Below, piece by piece: positions 4,143 to 40,485 of a stretch of DNA of 64,000 nt. The notes under the pieces are model-generated. The model saw only the letters and a program-made list of their open reading frames with translations. It was not told the DNA's origin and searched no databases. The DNA is taken from sequence record NC_070952.1. The stretch is one strand, 5' to 3'. The translations under genes were made by a program, and so were the position numbers. Each line of letters begins with the position of its first letter. Within the stretch, counting starts at the first letter, position 1.

Positions 4143-6962
4143 ATGTCTACTGCTTATCAACAAAATTACACCCAGGAAAATAACCCACTTGTAGACTATG
4201 CTATTCACAATATGTGGGGGAACCCTGAACTTCCCTCACAATACCAGATAAAACTGGCCCGTGTGTCTGGCTTGCAAGGCTTTGTTAACGATTTCGTTTA
4301 TATGGGTAAACGTCGGTATTTGCCGACGACCTATAACTTCTATCACGTCTTTACCTTAGGTGGACTTGATACCGGGTTCTGGAATTTCGGAAATCGTGGT
4401 AAGAGCTGGTATCCTGTCGATACCTGGGTTAGTGCTTCAGCGTTCGCTAAGAACCGTGCCGTTGCCATTGACGTATACGTCGCTGACGGTACAATGTTCC
4501 CTCGTGAAGGGACATTAATTATGCCGTGCTTTGATGGCGTGACGCTGGTAGCCATTCCTGTTAACAAGAACTTTCTTATGCCGCTGGATAAGAGCCTTTA
4601 TATTCATTGTTATTCATCGGATATAAATGTTCGCAACATGACCCCTGCTAATACGTTAAAGTACAGCTTTGGTTATGTTGGCAGCGTCTATAATAATGCC
4701 GACGACTGGAGTCGGGTGTTGACCAATTACAACGCCTGGAAAGCTTACGATATTGGGATGGTTTCTTTCTACCATAACGGCAAGCTTAAACCGATTGCCG
4801 GTGTTACCCTTAAAGCGGGTGATTTGATTGAAGCAACTTACGATCCCTCAATTGAGATGATCTTGAGTTACGAGTATTCAAAGATGCCGGACTATTTATC
4901 GACACTCGATAATAAAAGAAAGGTTATTCTTTTCCCTGGCTTTATGGATCTCCCACGTTATTATCGTTATTACGCTGACTGTACTTTTTACGTCACCAAT
5001 AAAGTTAATAATGAAAGCTATTATTTTAACCGTAATTCTGAAGATGCTATTCGTCAGCTGACACATCAAGATTACGGGATGGCTGCAGACTACATCGAGT
5101 ATTTGGGTAACCGTTTAATCAGTGAAGATAAAACGAACTCCAGCAAGATGACGGATATTGAAGTCACCGTTGCGTACCACAATACGCTTTGGAAAGTTGA
5201 GCTGGGTCCAACCGCCAGTCGCATTAACGATTTGTATCTGCTTGAAGACCCTGGTCAGATTCTCGGGGCAATGACGGGATCCAATTCTAACGTCAAAGAG
5301 TGGAAAGCATCAACGCTTGAAAATGCACCGACTAACTTAGTGCTCAATGGGATCATTCAGTCGCTCACTACGGACTCGGTACGTCAAGGGCTAGGTTATC
5401 ATGGTTGCAGCGTTGCACTGTCTAACACGCCATTGTACATGCCTTATATTACACCGGGTGACCCTGGCTTTGATGACTTCTACCCAACGGCACCGTTTAC
5501 CTCGGGATTGGGGTATCAGGTTCCACCTACCTTCATCGAAAGCTCCACTGCGTATGAGTATGATAAAGATGGATTACTCATTCGTAAAGTGGGTGTGCTT
5601 GATCAGCAATGGTACATGCCGCAGGAAGATGGGTTCTATGTTGAGTGGGCGTTAGGGCAAGCATCAACCTGGCTGGATTACATCATCAGTAAGACCGATG
5701 TGAAACTGCGTGAAGGTTACGGGTTCCGTGTCTATAAAGCACAATGGGCGATTGATCCAGATTACGATCCAACAGATATTACCGCCAATGAGATTAAGGT
5801 CTCTACTGACGGGACAGATCCGTATGGTGAAAATGGTCGGGAATTAAAAGTCTACCGTTCTGATGAAACCACTAACAACGCTGGTGATGATTTACCGCCG
5901 GGCGGTTACCCTGTCGGTGACTGGATTGACATTACCGGGGACAGTACGCAATACGATATTGTCAACGGGTATGTGGTCTGGAAATTCGATACGGTGAACT
6001 GGGTAGGGATGGTGGTATTTGATACCGTTCATTTATATAATGAATTTAACCTTACTCACATTGATAACTCATTGAGCTTTGGTATCACATTCAAATGGGC
6101 TATCGGTGGGATTCAACTTCCATTGGAACCGGGTCAAATTGATATCTGGATGAACAAGCACCCGCTGATCGAAAATGTGGATTACATTATGGATTTCCCT
6201 AATGTCTACATTATCAACAAGATGTGGTTGCAAGAAGGTTCACAGTTTATTCAGTATCGTGGTACGGGTCTATCGAAGAACGGATTGGTTCGCACCAGTG
6301 AACTGGGTATCGTGGCGGATGGGGTTATTGGGTACAATGGTCGTTACAATCTTCGTATTGACCGACCGACCAAGACGATTGTGAATGGGCGGTTGTATTT
6401 AACCCAGACTGTGGATCAGGCTGAAGACATTCATCATGGCGACAACATGAAGAGTATGAATGGCATGCCTTACGAGGTGAAGCACATTTACTCTGCTAAT
6501 AAGTATGTGGATAAGTATGACGCATACTGGGGCTATGATGATGCGTGGGCGCTTGACACGACAATCGGAAACTACCTGACCGCGAACGTCAAATATAAAT
6601 CCGTGAAGCCATCGGCTCCGATTTATATGGCGGGTGATAAATATACTTTGTTTAGTCCGTTCCTGAGCATGGTGGTTAATGAACTGCTGTTAGGGTTTAT
6701 GATTGCACCAACTCCATCAGGTCGGGAAGTTCCTTATTCCCCGCAGACAGTAGATGAAGTGATCAAAGATTACGAATGGATGTTAAAGTACGACCCGATT
6801 ATTCTTGGGTTTGATCTTCAGTTCTTTACCGTTCATCCTTACAGTAATCTTACCCGTCCAACTGTTACGCCTAATCAGCTTACTTTCATCAAGATGGTTA
6901 ATGAACTTTACCTTAAAGGTAAGGTCGCAATCGAAGGACACTTTGAGGTGAAGAATGAGTAG
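4143..6962 (+). CDS. Large virion/baseplate structural protein (phiKZ gp27-like)
   Basis: 939 aa, aromatic/beta-rich; synteny between sheath and terminase. Confidence 0.55.
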   Translation: MSTAYQQNYTQENNPLVDYAIHNMWGNPELPSQYQIKLARVSGLQGFVNDFVYMGKRRYLPTTYNFYHVFTLGGLDTGFWNFGNRGKSWYPVDTWVSASAFAKNRAVAIDVYVADGTMFPREGTLIMPCFDGVTLVAIPVNKNFLMPLDKSLYIHCYSSDINVRNMTPANTLKYSFGYVGSVYNNADDWSRVLTNYNAWKAYDIGMVSFYHNGKLKPIAGVTLKAGDLIEATYDPSIEMILSYEYSKMPDYLSTLDNKRKVILFPGFMDLPRYYRYYADCTFYVTNKVNNESYYFNRNSEDAIRQLTHQDYGMAADYIEYLGNRLISEDKTNSSKMTDIEVTVAYHNTLWKVELGPTASRINDLYLLEDPGQILGAMTGSNSNVKEWKASTLENAPTNLVLNGIIQSLTTDSVRQGLGYHGCSVALSNTPLYMPYITPGDPGFDDFYPTAPFTSGLGYQVPPTFIESSTAYEYDKDGLLIRKVGVLDQQWYMPQEDGFYVEWALGQASTWLDYIISKTDVKLREGYGFRVYKAQWAIDPDYDPTDITANEIKVSTDGTDPYGENGRELKVYRSDETTNNAGDDLPPGGYPVGDWIDITGDSTQYDIVNGYVVWKFDTVNWVGMVVFDTVHLYNEFNLTHIDNSLSFGITFKWAIGGIQLPLEPGQIDIWMNKHPLIENVDYIMDFPNVYIINKMWLQEGSQFIQYRGTGLSKNGLVRTSELGIVADGVIGYNGRYNLRIDRPTKTIVNGRLYLTQTVDQAEDIHHGDNMKSMNGMPYEVKHIYSANKYVDKYDAYWGYDDAWALDTTIGNYLTANVKYKSVKPSAPIYMAGDKYTLFSPFLSMVVNELLLGFMIAPTPSGREVPYSPQTVDEVIKDYEWMLKYDPIILGFDLQFFTVHPYSNLTRPTVTPNQLTFIKMVNELYLKGKVAIEGHFEVKNE

Positions 6963-16231: not shown

Positions 16232-16346
16232 AGTTACCTCTATTTCGAAATAGTCTTATTACAAAGATAATAAGATGTCTCATACGTTATCCATCCTAGG
16301 ACACATATGGAACGAGCTCATATGATCAAAGAGAAAACCATGCATA

Positions 16347-16377
16347 AACCCCCACCCCCGTGAGGAGGTGGGGGGTT
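16347..16377 (-). terminator. GC-rich terminator-like hairpin
   Basis: AACCCCCACCCCC-GTGA-GGAGGTGGGGGGTT; stem is better on the minus strand (C-A becomes G-U), where T-rich sequence follows. Confidence 0.6.
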
Positions 16378-16379
16378 AA

Positions 16380-17375
16380 GATATTGTTACCCAGCTTTGG
16401 TGTTTATAAACACCCTAGAAAAGACTCTGCGTAAATAACACGGGTGCCCCCGATCCATTACGAAAATCCTTAATAGGCTGTCTACTCTACTGATTGACAA
16501 CTTCTCCCTTGGCATAGGGAGCGGACTGTTTATTATCCACAAGGTACCGCTTGCCAACGGGCCATAGGAATAATGCTGACGTTCCTCTAGAATCGTAGAT
16601 TGAGGCTGCTCCTCACAGTTAAGGCGGAGCGATTCATGACGGATCTGTCAGGAGTTGGAGTCTCCAGATAACAGAACCCGTTTCGTCACTTTGTTTGTCA
16701 TCGCGGACTCATCAGATGGTTACGATGCCCCCACCACGGGAGAAATCCACTCCATATCACGGAGAGCAGATAAGGTTGAGAATCTTGATATCACCCAGGA
16801 AGACTAGCAAGTCTCCTGCTTTAGCCGCCTTTGATGCAACGTAAATGTGCTCGGCGGTTACCCTACGGTTTTCGTTCAAGATTCTCAAGAGGTTGTACCA
16901 ATGGTTGAAACACTGTGAGCGCTTATCCGTCAGGTATAATTAAAGCTCTATCTGGATATCAGCCACTGGTACAAAGAGGTTAACGACGACGGATCATCGT
17001 TAAGGAAAGGGCGCAACTTACCCATTTCTAAAGATGTTGTATCCTAATGGTGTTCCCATGGAATGTTTCGGGTTCGTTTCCAATTACTCGGCGTTATCGC
17101 CAAAGTGTCCTGAGCTTGGACGAAGGGAACCTATTCTCTTTAGACGCGTTGCAATGATACAGTAATTTTCAAACTATTGTATCGCCCACCAAGAGCTACT
17201 TCAATTAGTGAACTTAAGTCACCGTTCACTCTTGGATTTAACCCAGCAGTGCAACCTGCCGAGCATTGCCCTCGTTACTACCCACACCTGGATAACAAGG
17301 GTCTTACAAACGAATATAACGGGGTGATGAAACCATGTCGGTCCGCAGACCGGCAATCAGTTACACTCGAATGAA
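16380..17375. ncRNA. Candidate ~1-kb structured non-coding RNA, family not recognised
   Basis: No credible ORF; many nested helices (13-bp 16776-16788/16876-16888; 16893-16908/16959-16974; 16822-16829/16853-16860; 17027-17034/17137-17144); less AT-rich than other intergenic spacers. Confidence 0.65.
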
Positions 17376-17388
17376 TTACATAATATAC

Positions 17389-18789: not shown

Positions 18790-18915
18790 TTACCCAAAGC
18801 TGATGTGGATGAATGAGAAGATCCAACGGAGACCCTCGATAGCACACCAACCAGCGACGGCGCACACTAAACCGAAGACAATTATCATTCCGGTCCAACC
18901 ATTGCCCGACATCAT
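18790..18915 (-). CDS. Small membrane peptide (41 aa), not in ORF track
   Basis: GGAG RBS; MMSGNGWTGMIIVFGLVCAVAGWCAIEGLRWIFSFIHISFG. Confidence 0.55.
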   Translation of the reverse strand: MMSGNGWTGMIIVFGLVCAVAGWCAIEGLRWIFSFIHISFG

Positions 18916-18932
18916 AAATTATCTCCAGACAA

Positions 18933-18962
18933 ACAAAAAGAAAAGGGATCAATCGACCCCTT
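18933..18962 (-). terminator. Intrinsic terminator closing the tRNA/tRNA-like array
   Basis: Minus strand AAGGGGTC-GATT-GATCCCTT followed by TTCTTTTTG. Confidence 0.75.
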
Positions 18963-18982
18963 CTCTCTTCGTTAATAAAGGG

Positions 18983-19080
18983 TTACACGCCACACCTACC
19001 GACAGATGGGAAGTGGATCCCAGGTATGGTCACCTAAGTACCCCTGGCCTGTTGCACCCCGGCTACAGCATGGCGTGTAA
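18983..19080 (-). ncRNA. tRNA-like cloverleaf element 2 (98 nt, no CCA)
   Basis: 10-bp closing stem TTACACGCCA/TGGCGTGTAA enclosing three hairpins with 2/1/4/0-nt linkers, as in tRNA. Confidence 0.65.
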
Positions 19081-19082
19081 TT

Positions 19083-19186
19083 TGGCGCGGTCTTGGGAGT
19101 TTAACCCAACTACTGTGAAGATATCCAATGGTTGAAACTAATCATCCATCATCATACCTTCACGATATCTCTAAAGATATAACCGC
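19083..19186 (-). ncRNA. tRNA-like element 1 with 3'-GCCA and extended anticodon-position arm (104 nt)
   Basis: GCGGTT/GACCGC stem + G + CCA; T-arm TTGGG-TTAAACT-CCCAA; ATATCT-TTAG-AGATAT arm; long GTGAAG...CTTCAC arm. Confidence 0.7.
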
Positions 19187-19191
19187 AGATT

Positions 19192-19277
19192 TGGAGCCAA
19201 GTACAGGATTCGAACCTGTGAAGCCTTACGGCAGGGGATTTGCAATCCTCTCGCTTTGCCCACTCACGAAACTTGGC
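19192..19277 (-). tRNA. tRNA-Cys(GCA) with long variable arm, encoded CCA
   Basis: GCCAAGT TT CGTGAGTGGGCAAAGCG A GAGGA-TTGCAAA-TCCCC TGCCGTAAGGCTTC ACAGG-TTCGAAT-CCTGT ACTTGGC T CCA. Confidence 0.93.
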
Positions 19278-19283
19278 GAATCT

Positions 19284-19778
19284 TTAAACTGTTTTATTCT
19301 GATCATCAACAACAGGGGTTGCTGGCGCAGAAGAAACTACAGTTTGGGGTGACGCTGGTGAAGCCGTTAACACGGGAACAACTTCAGGTTTCACTTCTTC
19401 CTTTTCCAGATGAAGTTTTACCAGTTCTTCCTTAGTCAAGGTTTCAAAATGCTGAACTAACGCTTCGATCTGCTGAAGGTGTGATTCACCATTGACTTTT
19501 AAAGTAGAGAGTTCGACAAGTACCTTGGCTTTAAACGTTTCCCACAGTCCATCTCCCACGTCTTTGAGTTTCTCTTGGACATCGGCAGGAAGAAGCTTCG
19601 TTTTAAGCTCGTTAACTTGTGCTTGTAGTTGACTTTGAATACCATCAACATAAGCCTGCAGTTTAGGGTCTGTTGCAACACTACCGGTGGTATTATGTTT
19701 ACGGAACAAAATCGCACCGGCAATACCGACAGCAACACCTACAACCAACATAACTAACAGCATCCCAATAGAATTCAT
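19284..19778 (-). CDS. N-terminally membrane-anchored coiled-coil protein
   Basis: TM helix MLLVMLVVGVAVGIAGAILF then basic RKH and heptad-rich region; AAGGT RBS. Confidence 0.7.
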   Translation of the reverse strand: MNSIGMLLVMLVVGVAVGIAGAILFRKHNTTGSVATDPKLQAYVDGIQSQLQAQVNELKTKLLPADVQEKLKDVGDGLWETFKAKVLVELSTLKVNGESHLQQIEALVQHFETLTKEELVKLHLEKEEVKPEVVPVLTASPASPQTVVSSAPATPVVDDQNKTV

Positions 19779-20369: not shown

Positions 20370-20669
20370 TTACTCTACTTCAATCCAGTCTTCAGCCTGC
20401 AGATCCGAAGAGGATGGAACCCAGGAATTCACGCGACCATTGGTTTCGTTAACAATAACAAAGAAAGGATCGATAAAAGCAGGTTCACCGTTTTCCAATT
20501 GAACTTCATTGGTAGCAATTGCACCGTGGATCTTAACGTACAGCTTTTTACCGTTCCATCCAACGCGAGCAAACTTACGAGGCTTCTTAGTTTTCAGTGA
20601 ACCACGCATGGCTTCGTTAGCGATAGCATAACTGACCGTAACTGGAGCAGCGGAATTAGATTGTGTCAT
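20370..20669 (-). CDS. DUF2829-family phage protein
   Basis: RVGWNGKKLY and WVPSSSDLQAEDW signature motifs; GGAG RBS. Confidence 0.8.
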   Translation of the reverse strand: MTQSNSAAPVTVSYAIANEAMRGSLKTKKPRKFARVGWNGKKLYVKIHGAIATNEVQLENGEPAFIDPFFVIVNETNGRVNSWVPSSSDLQAEDWIEVE

Positions 20670-39534: not shown

Positions 39535-40485
39535 ATGAAAGACTTTAACATCTATGCAGTAGGTGGTACTGGGATCAACATCGCTAACCGTTTTCTGAAA
39601 GACAACCGTAATGGTCGCGCCGTCGACACTATCGTTGGTTTCGATACGTCAAGCGCTAACCCAGTTTCAGATGGTCTGTTCAACGTTGAGCGTGTGCCGG
39701 ATGCCGAAGGTTCTGGCGGTAACAAGAAAGCGCATGCTGATAAGTACCCTGATTTCGCCAAACAGATGCTGGCCAAATATCCACCGAACCGTTTGAACAT
39801 CGTGGTGTTCTCAACCGGTGGTGGTACTGGTGCATCTCTGGGTCCGTGGATTGTCCGTAATCTGCTGCAGCGTAAAGTTCCCGTCCTGGCGATTGTTATC
39901 GGTGACCGTTCAAGCTACAACGAACATGATAACACAATCGGTACCCTGGGTTCGCTGTACAACCAGACCAAGCTGGGTCATTCGGTTCTGTTCTCTTACA
40001 TCGAAAACAAACCAACGGTTACTCAGGGTGACGTCAACGCCAATGCAGCTGCCCGCATTGATAATGCGATCATGTTGTTCAGCATGGAAAACGAACGTAT
40101 CGACTATGCCGACGTGTTCAACTTCTTCTTCTACACTACCGTAGTTGATGCAGATCCGGTGTTGACTCAGTTGACTTTCCTGACTGACAATGATGTAGGC
40201 AACTACAAAAGCAAACCAGTCGCAGCATTAAGTCTGTACGCTGATGCGGATCAAATCAAATCTCCGTTCGAAGATCTGCTTTATCGTAAAGCGGGTATCT
40301 ACGGTGAAACGTATCGCGGTATCACCCAGACTACTCACGCAGTCCTGGATCACGGTGACACGCTGGAAAACCTGAAAGAGATGATCAACAACAAAGCAGT
40401 GAAAACTGATCAACTCGCTGGCCAGTTCCGTAATAAAGGTAATCTGAACTTCGGCGGTAACGCTGACGATGATGGCATGATGTAA
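39535..40485 (+). CDS. phuZ: PhuZ tubulin (phage spindle)
   Basis: VGGTGINIA, tubulin signature GGGTGAS, acidic C-terminal tail; 316 aa. Confidence 0.93.
   Translation: MKDFNIYAVGGTGINIANRFLKDNRNGRAVDTIVGFDTSSANPVSDGLFNVERVPDAEGSGGNKKAHADKYPDFAKQMLAKYPPNRLNIVVFSTGGGTGASLGPWIVRNLLQRKVPVLAIVIGDRSSYNEHDNTIGTLGSLYNQTKLGHSVLFSYIENKPTVTQGDVNANAAARIDNAIMLFSMENERIDYADVFNFFFYTTVVDADPVLTQLTFLTDNDVGNYKSKPVAALSLYADADQIKSPFEDLLYRKAGIYGETYRGITQTTHAVLDHGDTLENLKEMINNKAVKTDQLAGQFRNKGNLNFGGNADDDGMM

Follow-up and report, generated by a model that had tools for sequence, protein, structure and literature searches.

Introduction

Small stable RNAs have been known in the transfer RNA (tRNA) cluster of bacteriophage T4 since the 1970s. 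At the end of that cluster, tRNA-Arg is followed on the same strand, after 1 nucleotide (nt), by rnaD (119 nt) and, 6 nt further on, by rnaC (139 nt), whose products RNAD and RNAC correspond to species 2 and species 1, respectively; a canonical T arm stands close to the 3' end of rnaC, and CCA closes rnaD. The roles of RNAC and RNAD are stated as unknown (PMC3014915, PMC9697503), and Rfam holds no family for either of them. The array described here, which is of the same design, lies in a stretch of 64,000 nt of sequence record NC_070952.1 (hereafter, the window). The source is Erwinia phage AH04 (MZ501267; 262,639 base pairs [bp]), a jumbo phage of the genus Meadowvirus whose host is Erwinia billingiae, and coordinates in the window are those of the AH04 record. 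On the minus strand, a tRNA-Cys gene is followed within a few nt by two elements, E1 and E2, which, as in T4, correspond to RNAs of roughly 100-140 nt placed after the last tRNA. We regard E1 and E2 as real, new families of conserved structured RNA, of a kind that is known but unexplained. The explanation that we favor, at a probability of about 55%, is that both would be non-decoding RNAs matured by the tRNA pathway and binding a putative protein partner.

With T4 RNAC and RNAD, E1 and E2 share the layout, that is, the spacing of a few nt, the common strand and the lack of coding capacity, but neither sequence nor fold. No T4-like phage was matched when E1 and E2 were compared by BLAST with phage records, and T4 rnaC scored 16.5 bits under our covariance model of E1 (R1), which is the level of any ordinary tRNA. 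Furthermore, the carriers of E1 and E2 are phiKZ-like jumbo phages, a lineage distinct from T4. An unrelated lineage thus carries at least two, and clade-wide four, conserved and well-defined RNA families of the T4 kind, and their invariant modules point to specific candidate binding sites, so that an old question gains comparative material and mutational targets.

Other RNAs also offer partial parallels. The precursor of 4.5S RNA and the C4 RNA of phages P1 and P7 combine a long terminal helix with an unpaired (N)CC(A/C) tail, and this is enough for RNase P to define a 5' end. E2 resembles both in its long terminal helix and tail, but matches no signal recognition particle (SRP)/4.5S model and has no target complementarity in the window. 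In the tRNA-microRNA units of murine gammaherpesvirus 68, and in the engineered "tRNA scaffold", a tRNA module provides processing and stability to an unrelated RNA cargo inside or beside it. E1, and a related element found in other phages (E4, see below), look like natural counterparts with a putative cargo in the anticodon arm, although the two systems just named are eukaryotic viral or artificial. In Mycobacterium smegmatis, RNase P cleaves the YrlA RNA, to which CCA is added, and its tRNA fold has been proposed to be stabilizing (PMC4201824). YrlA (Rfam model RF02553) and E1 are alike in being non-coding RNAs with a tRNA-mimicking module; YrlA, however, ends in a Ro60-binding stem and has its tRNA-like part internally, whereas the ends of E1 form the acceptor stem, and E1 lacks a GG-containing D loop and a UUCGA T loop. 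Canonical phage tRNAs, finally, share their loci and, as we reconstruct them, their transcripts with E1 and E2, which nevertheless cannot decode and escape the Rfam tRNA model.

Structure and conservation of E1

A preliminary description of this locus, made from the letters of the sequence, had placed on the minus strand tRNA-Cys (19277-19192), E1, E2 (19080-18983) and then a hairpin with a U tract, with spacers of 5 nt between the tRNA and E1 and of 2 nt between E1 and E2. Our analysis returned the same order and spacing, except that the first spacer measures 4 nt when the U at 19187 is taken as nucleotide 1 of the E1 acceptor. The whole 366-nt array folds with z = -4.9, every module folds separately, and the view of the locus as a packed polycistronic array of one real tRNA and two non-coding structured RNAs stands. 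E1 and its parts are as follows.

19083..19187, minus strand: E1, a 105-nt anticodon-less tRNA-like RNA (minimum free energy fold; covariation in four helices; model R1; stops in six frames)
19187-19181 with 19092-19086, minus strand: acceptor stem, first pair U-G (covariation)
19165..19180, minus strand: D-position hairpin, a 6-bp stem and tetraloop without G18-G19 (4 of 6 pairs compensatory)
19115..19163, minus strand: extended arm in the anticodon position (7 of 16 pairs compensatory)
19132..19145, minus strand: invariant 14-nt apical loop AUGAUUAGUUUCWA (invariant alignment columns)
19114-19110, minus strand: invariant AGUAG junction (alignment)
19109-19093, minus strand: T-position arm, 5 bp with the 7-nt loop UUAAACU (3 of 5 pairs compensatory)
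19085-19083, minus strand: CCA tail

Taken alone, AH04 E1 folds into the shape that had been proposed for it, at -37.7 kcal/mol against -21.8 +/- 3.4 for shuffled sequences (z = -4.7; none of 200 shuffles equals it). All the stems read from the letters were recovered, namely GCGGTT/GACCGC followed by G-CCA, the 6-bp ATATCT/AGATAT, the long arm closed by GTGAAG/CTTCAC, and TTGGG-TTAAACT-CCCAA. Comparison of six homologous sequences (64-88% identical) bore out this fold, with compensatory changes in every helix: a four-helix model leaves 96% of cells paired, and 18 of its 34 pairs, spread through all four helices, changed in a compensatory manner, while controls in which the pairing partner was slid gave 0-3 compensatory pairs and approximately 40-47% pairing. 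Under model R1, AH04 E1 scores 119 bits and the copies in six other phages 100-114 bits, with one copy per genome. The E1 of pEt-SU is a 58-nt version that precisely lacks the long arm and scores 42 bits.

Several traits of E1 are those of a tRNA. Its acceptor stem has seven pairs, the first being U-G or C-G, all of them formed in six of six sequences, and passes into the T-position arm with no gap (linkers of 0/1/5/0 nt). At the ends, a U or C at -1/+1 stands opposite the G that precedes CCA, and the CCA itself is encoded in four of seven copies. The T-position arm has 5 bp and a 7-nt loop. The earlier view of E1 as a tRNA-shaped mimic, with acceptor stem, CCA end and T-position arm kept by covariation, was hence upheld. 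Other traits depart from a tRNA. In place of a canonical anticodon arm, with its 5-bp stem and 7-nt loop, E1 has an interrupted 16-bp arm under the 14-nt loop. Its outer stem, of 10 bp, is variable, and a GA/G internal loop separates it from the inner stem, of 6 bp (UGRUGG/CCAYUG); the distal part of the arm is invariant, as are the 14-nt loop and the AGUAG junction. Nor is there a canonical elbow (G18-G19 with a T loop UUCRANY), since the D-position tetraloop varies among homologues and the T loop, which reads UUARANN in six of seven homologues, has A at position 56. The further TGA/TCA pairs that had been drawn inside the apical loop form in AH04 only; the other five homologues read TCT there. 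This 14-nt loop is presumably the functional site.

The acceptor stem of E1, from which CCA projects unpaired and on which the T-position arm stacks as in a minihelix, might belong to a tRNA-like RNA that is aminoacylated and enters translation or an aminoacyl-tRNA-dependent pathway. We consider this very unlikely. E1 has no anticodon, has the A at position 56 noted above, and lacks an encoded CCA in three of seven copies. Both finders and models of transfer-messenger RNA (tmRNA) were negative, as ARAGORN called none in the window and no tmRNA family matched E1 or E2 at E <= 10. Moreover, the first acceptor pairs vary freely, with G-C replaced by U-A at pair 2:71 and A-U, G-C and U-G alternating further inward; this free covariation argues against a conserved synthetase identity, and therefore against aminoacylation.

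Structure and conservation of E2

18983..19080, minus strand: E2, a 98-nt rod-shaped structured RNA (RNAalifold consensus; pair counts; model R2)
19080-19069 with 18994-18983, minus strand: P1
19065-19060 with 19001-18996, minus strand: P2
19059-19057 with 19010-19008, minus strand: P3 (GGG/CCC)
19047-19043 with 19024-19020, minus strand: P4 (CCAGG/CCUGG)
within 19042-19025, minus strand: variable apical hairpin
19011..19056, minus strand: sequence-invariant core around P4 (invariant alignment columns)
19056-19048, UGCAACAGG, and 19019-19011, GAUCCACUU, minus strand: internal loop strands, flanking P4
18980..18982, minus strand: 3' tail CCC (flank comparison)

E2 had been described as three arms in tRNA topology, and here the comparison led elsewhere. 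Across homologues, arms 1 and 3 of that cloverleaf are only 61% and 65% paired, with zero compensatory change, and we rejected it on these pair counts in favor of a rod of helices P1-P4, which is the RNAalifold consensus of six sequences (51-93% identical) and leaves 95% of cells paired, 11 of 27 pairs being compensatory. No arm of E2 resembles a 5-bp anticodon stem with a 7-nt loop, either in the consensus or in the pair counts. The closing stem, in contrast, did not only survive but grew, from the 10 bp first seen to 12-13 bp when G-U pairs are included, and six of its pairs are compensatory; being 12-14 bp long among homologues, P1 is not a 7-bp acceptor. Compensatory pairs lie mostly in P1 and P2, with one in P4 (UCAGG/CCUGA in Moabite), and the apical hairpin shows CGC/GCG against UAC/GUG within the AH04 group; N1M2, pEt-SU and Moabite have only a short loop in its place. 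Because E2 on its own folds with a long terminal stem but gains only modestly in stability over shuffles (z = -2.3), support for this structure comes from the comparison of homologues; since the strands around P4 never vary, however, covariation cannot test their folding. The fuller conserved words are GGGGURCAAYAGRYCAGGG and CAUACCUGRGAUCCACUUMCCA, both of which are also found in UViG_3300010002. Model R2 scores AH04 E2 at 105 bits and its copies in five other lineages at 83-103 bits; neither R1 nor R2 finds a second copy in the window, and each genome has one of each.

That E2 lacks a CCA end holds for AH04, whose tail is CCC, but not for the family. After P1 come U-CCA in N1M2 and pEt-SU, CCA in Moabite and C-CCA in Survivor, while AH04 and its relative have CCC and UViG_3300010002 has CC-U; hence N-CCA is found in four of seven copies and CC in the remainder. 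With N-CC(A) directly after P1, E2 ends like an acceptor stem, and this end is the sole feature that E1 and E2 have in common.

Covarying peripheral helices, a variable apical hairpin and invariant internal-loop nucleotides are a pattern typical of ribozymes and aptamers, and E2, and possibly E1, might be a self-cleaving ribozyme that resolves the polycistron or an aptamer that sequesters, for example, an immune signaling nucleotide. We think this unlikely. No ribozyme or riboswitch family of Rfam 15 matches, even at E <= 10; by eye, there is no pseudoknot or known catalytic core, and no convincing fit of hairpin, hammerhead, hepatitis delta virus (HDV) or twister cores to the invariant parts of E1 and E2. 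As E2 changes its position in the cluster from phage to phage, it is not tied to one junction or downstream gene. The same inspection by eye of the invariant parts of E1 and E2 found no convincing K-turn, loop E, T-loop, CsrA site, SRP domain IV or feature like a selenocysteine insertion sequence (SECIS).

Invariant single-stranded loops of 9-14 nt displayed on stable helices could also belong to antisense or regulatory RNAs acting in trans and using an RNase P-type end for their maturation, in which case the loops would pair with transcripts of the phage or of its host. A precedent would be the C4 RNA of P1 and P7, reportedly an RNase P-matured phage antisense RNA according to Hartmann et al. 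1995. When sites with up to two mismatches were allowed, however, the window contained no complement to the E1 loop, and none to either E2 loop strand apart from the genes themselves, and such a role appears doubtful to us.

Coding capacity and known families

Protein coding by E1 or E2 on either strand was considered and rejected. Homologues of E1 have stop codons in all six frames. Those of E2 have no frame open throughout on either strand, their antisense frames being interrupted in N1M2 and Moabite, and their lengths (94, 97, 98, 99 and 100 nt) do not differ by multiples of three. Furthermore, the order of the elements changes between phages, and open reading frames (ORFs) that span them therefore cannot be conserved. 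This applies to the two plus-strand ORFs (18803-19135 and 19128-19352) that the preliminary description had named as competing candidates for the conserved feature of the locus; stops in homologues show that they are not. In Moabite, a 54-amino-acid (aa) hypothetical protein, CPT_Moabite_079 (locus L005, 1411-1575), overlaps E2 in sense. As its frame is conserved neither in AH04 nor in the relative of AH04, this gene call is probably spurious.

Along with plus-strand coding, we find it scarcely credible that E1 and E2 are functionless tRNA pseudogenes in decay. An origin from tRNA duplicates is suggested by a related element, E3, that aligns with the 3' half of class-II tRNA-Cys and tRNA-Tyr genes, and one arm has been lost in the E1 of pEt-SU. 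Still, neutral decay cannot account for compensatory changes in every helix, together with invariant loops, in phages from six host genera.

It had been anticipated that standard tRNA finders would overlook E1 and E2, and indeed both ARAGORN and Rfam report only tRNA-Cys. Rfam searches of the window at the gathering threshold, and of 18800-19400 at E <= 10, returned no family for E1 or E2; weak matches to snoZ40 (18.7 bits) and ctRNA (18 bits) were dismissed as noise. In the latter, 601-nt search, neither the tRNA model RF00005 nor the YrlA model had a hit with E <= 10 on E1 or E2; weak YrlA matches (18-21 bits, against a threshold of 69) fell only on other elements or tRNAs of related loci. 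By name, none of the products of AH04 genes 1-64 is Ro60-like. The genes for E1 and E2 are unannotated in GenBank, or lie under a probably spurious ORF call as in Moabite, and are invisible to these programs.

Distribution and genomic context

Homologues were sought by blastn against 50,697 phage records and by pattern scans of IMG/VR, metagenome and bacterial-genome collections. E1 and E2 were found in about nine related jumbo-phage lineages. Blastn matches to E2, with 80-90% local identity, came from Edwardsiella phage pEt-SU, Serratia phages Moabite and Yaphecito, Klebsiella phage N1M2 and Pantoea phage Survivor, and matches to E1 from N1M2, Survivor and Shewanella phage SXP01. Eight pattern scans of viral contigs and one of metagenomes yielded just three more carriers, all of them uncultivated jumbo-phage contigs (260-267 kb) from IMG/VR; whatever else the scans returned was a chance match. 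Among the chance matches we count 15 loci retrieved with a loose E2 pattern (L011-L025) and three retrieved with a second pattern, as well as two occurrences of the E1 loop word in bacterial-genome contigs, where nothing but the word was shared (R1 scores of 18 and 9 bits). An origin from a host or a plasmid was rejected, as neither element had a blastn match in 5,426 Escherichia coli genomes or in PLSDB plasmids. Both families are restricted to one clade of phiKZ-like jumbo phages that infect Enterobacterales and Shewanella. The assignment of AH04 to a phiKZ-like lineage, which the preliminary description had assumed, is consistent with its annotated tubulin/FtsZ-like gene (39535-40485), and the genome announcement names N1M2, OBP and pEt-SU as its nearest phages and Cys(gca) as its single tRNA (PMC8567782).

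In every carrier the elements lie inside a tRNA cluster, a few nt apart, in an order and combination that vary; homologue spacers are 1-18 nt long and mostly A/U-rich. The order is Asn-E2-E1-E3-Arg in N1M2, Tyr-E2-E1short-E4 in pEt-SU, E2-Ser-E3-E1-E4 in UViG_3300010002, Asn-Ser-E2-...-E1 in Survivor and E3-E1-Cys in SXP01, and the canonical tRNAs of the carrier clusters are Asn, Tyr, Ser, Arg, Met and Cys. Synteny around the cluster is conserved, with a Tad2-like gene, an AH04_20-like gene, the cluster of tRNAs and non-coding RNAs, a small membrane protein gene and a glutaredoxin gene. The Tad2-like anti-Thoeris domain was recognized in AH04_22 (20370-20669, minus strand; annotated as hypothetical) with E = 3e-15, and in N1M2_258 (locus L034, 3701-3940, minus strand) with E = 2e-17. 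The latter appears to be misannotated as a methionine--tRNA ligase. We had considered it as a tRNA-binding protein beside the cluster, a candidate that we dropped given its Tad2-like domain; it is unrelated to AH04_21. In pEt-SU a protein with a DUF2829 domain occupies the position equivalent to the Tad2-like gene. Among isolate phages, the AH04_20 protein found only AH04 itself by tblastn.

Proposed maturation and role

According to the explanation that we favor, tRNA-Cys, E1 and E2 would form one transcription unit and be made as one precursor, which host tRNA-maturation enzymes would resolve into three separate stable RNAs. RNase P would cut each 5' end, and the 3' ends would be produced by endo- or exonucleolytic trimming and CCA repair. 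We infer such processing from that of bacterial tRNA operons and from the known substrates of RNase P, among which tRNA minihelices are established, as are hairpins that carry RCCA at the 3' side (pre-4.5S RNA and P1/P7 C4 RNA, for example). The acceptor-like terminal stem and the N-CC(A) tail could serve each RNA as a handle for processing and stability, and the tRNA-like end may shield E1 and E2 from exonucleases, as proposed for YrlA (PMC4201824). To this end E1 would add a tRNA-like core with the T-position arm, its working part being perhaps the 14-nt loop on the long arm along with the AGUAG junction; in E2, the working part would be the internal loop around P4. The invariant modules are expected to bind a highly conserved trans-acting partner, most likely a host protein associated with tRNA or translation, or a nuclease. 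Such a partner should itself be highly conserved, because the modules are unchanged across phages of Erwinia, Klebsiella, Serratia, Edwardsiella, Pantoea and Shewanella; they persist even though the RNAs are 51-93% identical and the neighboring AH04_20 has diverged past tblastn detection among isolates. Within their clade, both RNAs, like E3 and E4, behave as movable modules of the tRNA cluster.

Several points weigh against this proposal. The transcription, processing and stability of E1 and E2 are all inferred. The canonical tRNA elbow is contacted by the specificity domain of RNase P, and E1, with its tetraloop D hairpin and the A at T-loop position 56, does not have such an elbow. SXP01, N1M2 and pEt-SU have an E1 without encoded CCA, and in the E1 of Survivor a 7-bp hairpin with a 5-nt loop takes the place of the 7-nt T loop. 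As the supposedly functional long arm is absent from pEt-SU E1, the core would have to play a separate role, or else this copy is in decay. Covariation offers no test of the conserved E2 cores, which never vary, and the sample is small, with six to seven sequences per family.

A more specialized version of this explanation, first put forward in the preliminary description, would have E1 and E2, with E3 and E4, act as decoys or inhibitors of tRNA-targeting immunity, so that they sequester or block a defense effector and protect the real tRNA pool. The same description also named synthetases, EF-Tu and Ro60 as what E1 and E2 might bind; particular versions of these ideas are disfavored by the lack of a YrlA match at E <= 10 and by the free covariation of the first acceptor pairs. 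Candidate targets of decoys would be anticodon nucleases, toxins that modify the acceptor end (CapRel, MenT/AbiE-type), PARIS AriB and retron PtuAB, and the four elements would together make up a set of tRNA mimics that cannot decode and that serve either as competitors resistant to cleavage or as sponges, the effectors being those that recognize tRNA bodies or CCA ends. By analogy with phage tRNAs, which are documented counter-measures to such systems (PMC10264068, PMC11464382, PMC11555353), we offer this as a tentative possibility. The complete tRNA body of E3, with a UACG tetraloop for an anticodon loop, is what an uncleavable competitor might look like, a Tad2-like anti-Thoeris gene is conserved just upstream in AH04, N1M2 and pEt-SU, and the patchy, shuffled distribution of the elements is typical of accessory counter-defense genes. 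The acceptor-like end, as the only trait shared by E1 and E2, also fits, but is equally explained by the needs of processing. Nucleases of the PrrC, RloC and colicin type, on the other hand, read the 7-nt anticodon loop, of which neither E1 nor E2 has a mimic; the invariant modules are unlike any part of a tRNA, and a stoichiometric sponge would require very high abundance. Since phage tRNAs counter tRNA-cleaving immunity, E1 and E2 are testable candidates for RNA-only anti-defense factors and, if this role is true, T4 RNAC and RNAD would also gain a function that can be tested.

Flanking features of the array

19192..19277, minus strand: tRNA-Cys(GCA), 86 nt (ARAGORN; Rfam RF00005, 39.3 bits; GenBank AH04_19; SXP01 orthologue)
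18933..18974, minus strand: terminator-like hairpin, core GGGGUC-GAUU-GAUCCC followed by UUUUCUUUUUGUUU (whole-array fold; conserved in an AH04-like contig)

The tRNA-Cys was read correctly in the preliminary description and is called by both programs. It is the sole annotated tRNA of AH04, with an encoded CCA, U73 as the discriminator and a class-II architecture that includes a 14-nt variable arm (GCC-GUAA-GGC). As a class-II tRNA-Cys it is unusual. Its variable arm resembles those that pEt-SU and Moabite have in their tRNA-Tyr(GUA) genes, and its anticodon stem has one A-C mismatch. An orthologue with an identical acceptor stem is found in SXP01 (locus L002, 1653-1739). All annotated AH04 genes between 13923 and 20669 are on the minus strand, and GenBank has no annotated feature between this tRNA and gene 18 (18790-18915).

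Downstream of E2, where an intrinsic terminator had been proposed, lies a terminator-like 19-bp hairpin (18974-18933) with a GGGGUC/GAUCCC core and a U tract. Hairpin and UUUUCUUUUUGUUU tract are conserved, yet a simple consensus terminator scan made no call on them, probably because the U tract pairs with an upstream A/G tract. The small membrane-protein gene AH04_18 starts at 18915, 18 nt past the hairpin.

Related elements and other observations

The two elements that accompany E1 and E2 in other phages of the clade are also unannotated. E3 is derived from a tRNA, with an expanded D region and an anticodon stem capped, in the Rfam alignment, by a 4-nt UACG loop; its Rfam tRNA scores are 20.7-31.5 bits. 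It occurs in SXP01, N1M2, Moabite and relatives, and UViG_3300010002, and is absent from AH04, where whole-genome BLAST with E3 and E4 gave a match only at tRNA-Cys/E1. Its 3' half aligns with class-II tRNA-Cys and tRNA-Tyr genes of the carrier phages, and the replacement of its anticodon loop by UACG implies that this clade makes non-decoding tRNA derivatives. E4, of about 135 nt, had no Rfam match. Its acceptor stem has 7 bp, its D hairpin is closed by a GUGG loop, its T arm is canonical (UUCGACU or UUCAACU), and its anticodon arm holds a large insertion made of two hairpins; it is carried by pEt-SU and three uncultivated contigs. The positions of both are given below by locus.

E3: L009 192-278; L002 1453-1537; L003 1751-1837; L005 1294-1378; L026 about 2383-2470
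E4: L006 about 1645-1780; L009 393-545; L010 6047-6185; L029 5170-5310; possibly L004 1590-1745

E3 was seen as well in Serratia phages 2050HW, BUCT660, Haymo, Totoro and Kodama and in Pectobacterium phage vB_ParM-25. Citrobacter phage CF1, which is T4-like, also has an E3-like gene in its tRNA region, with a T4 rnaD homologue directly downstream of it, and these neighbors link the jumbo-phage elements to the small RNAs of the T4 type. In CF1 a larger loop is found in the place of UACG (locus L037, 1187-1275, with the rnaD homologue at about 1290-1390).

The clusters of related phages held other features worth recording. In two loci (L027, 4960-5480; L029, 4490-5000) an HNH endonuclease ORF comes after the 5' half of a tRNA-Asn gene, an arrangement that suggests the insertion of a homing endonuclease into or next to a tRNA gene; in L029, the ORF is followed by another tRNA-Asn gene, which is complete. 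Between the AH04_20 homologue and the interrupted tRNA-Asn of L027, approximately 440 nt (4520-4960) that are G+C-rich, look rich in hairpins and have no gene call may be a further large non-coding RNA, although Rfam at the gathering threshold gave no match there. About 270 nt between tRNA-Ser and E3 in Moabite (L005, 1000-1290) and 2050HW (L026, 2120-2380) are partly conserved, overlap only a 40-aa ORF call and may be another RNA. The uncultivated phage of L009, which has both E3 and E4, carries at 801-878 a tRNA-like gene (42 bits; anticodon ACA according to ARAGORN) with an over-long anticodon region.

In AH04 itself, 1.16 kb at 16232-17388 are devoid of annotated genes and long ORFs. Its minus strand contains the words CUGAUGAG...CGAAAC, with no match to an Rfam ribozyme. 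Within this region, a patch at 17185-17244 is 80-90% identical in Kosakonia phage Kc263 and Serratia phages Yubaba and Sureiya, and another, at about 16674-16734, matches Pantoea phage Survivor.

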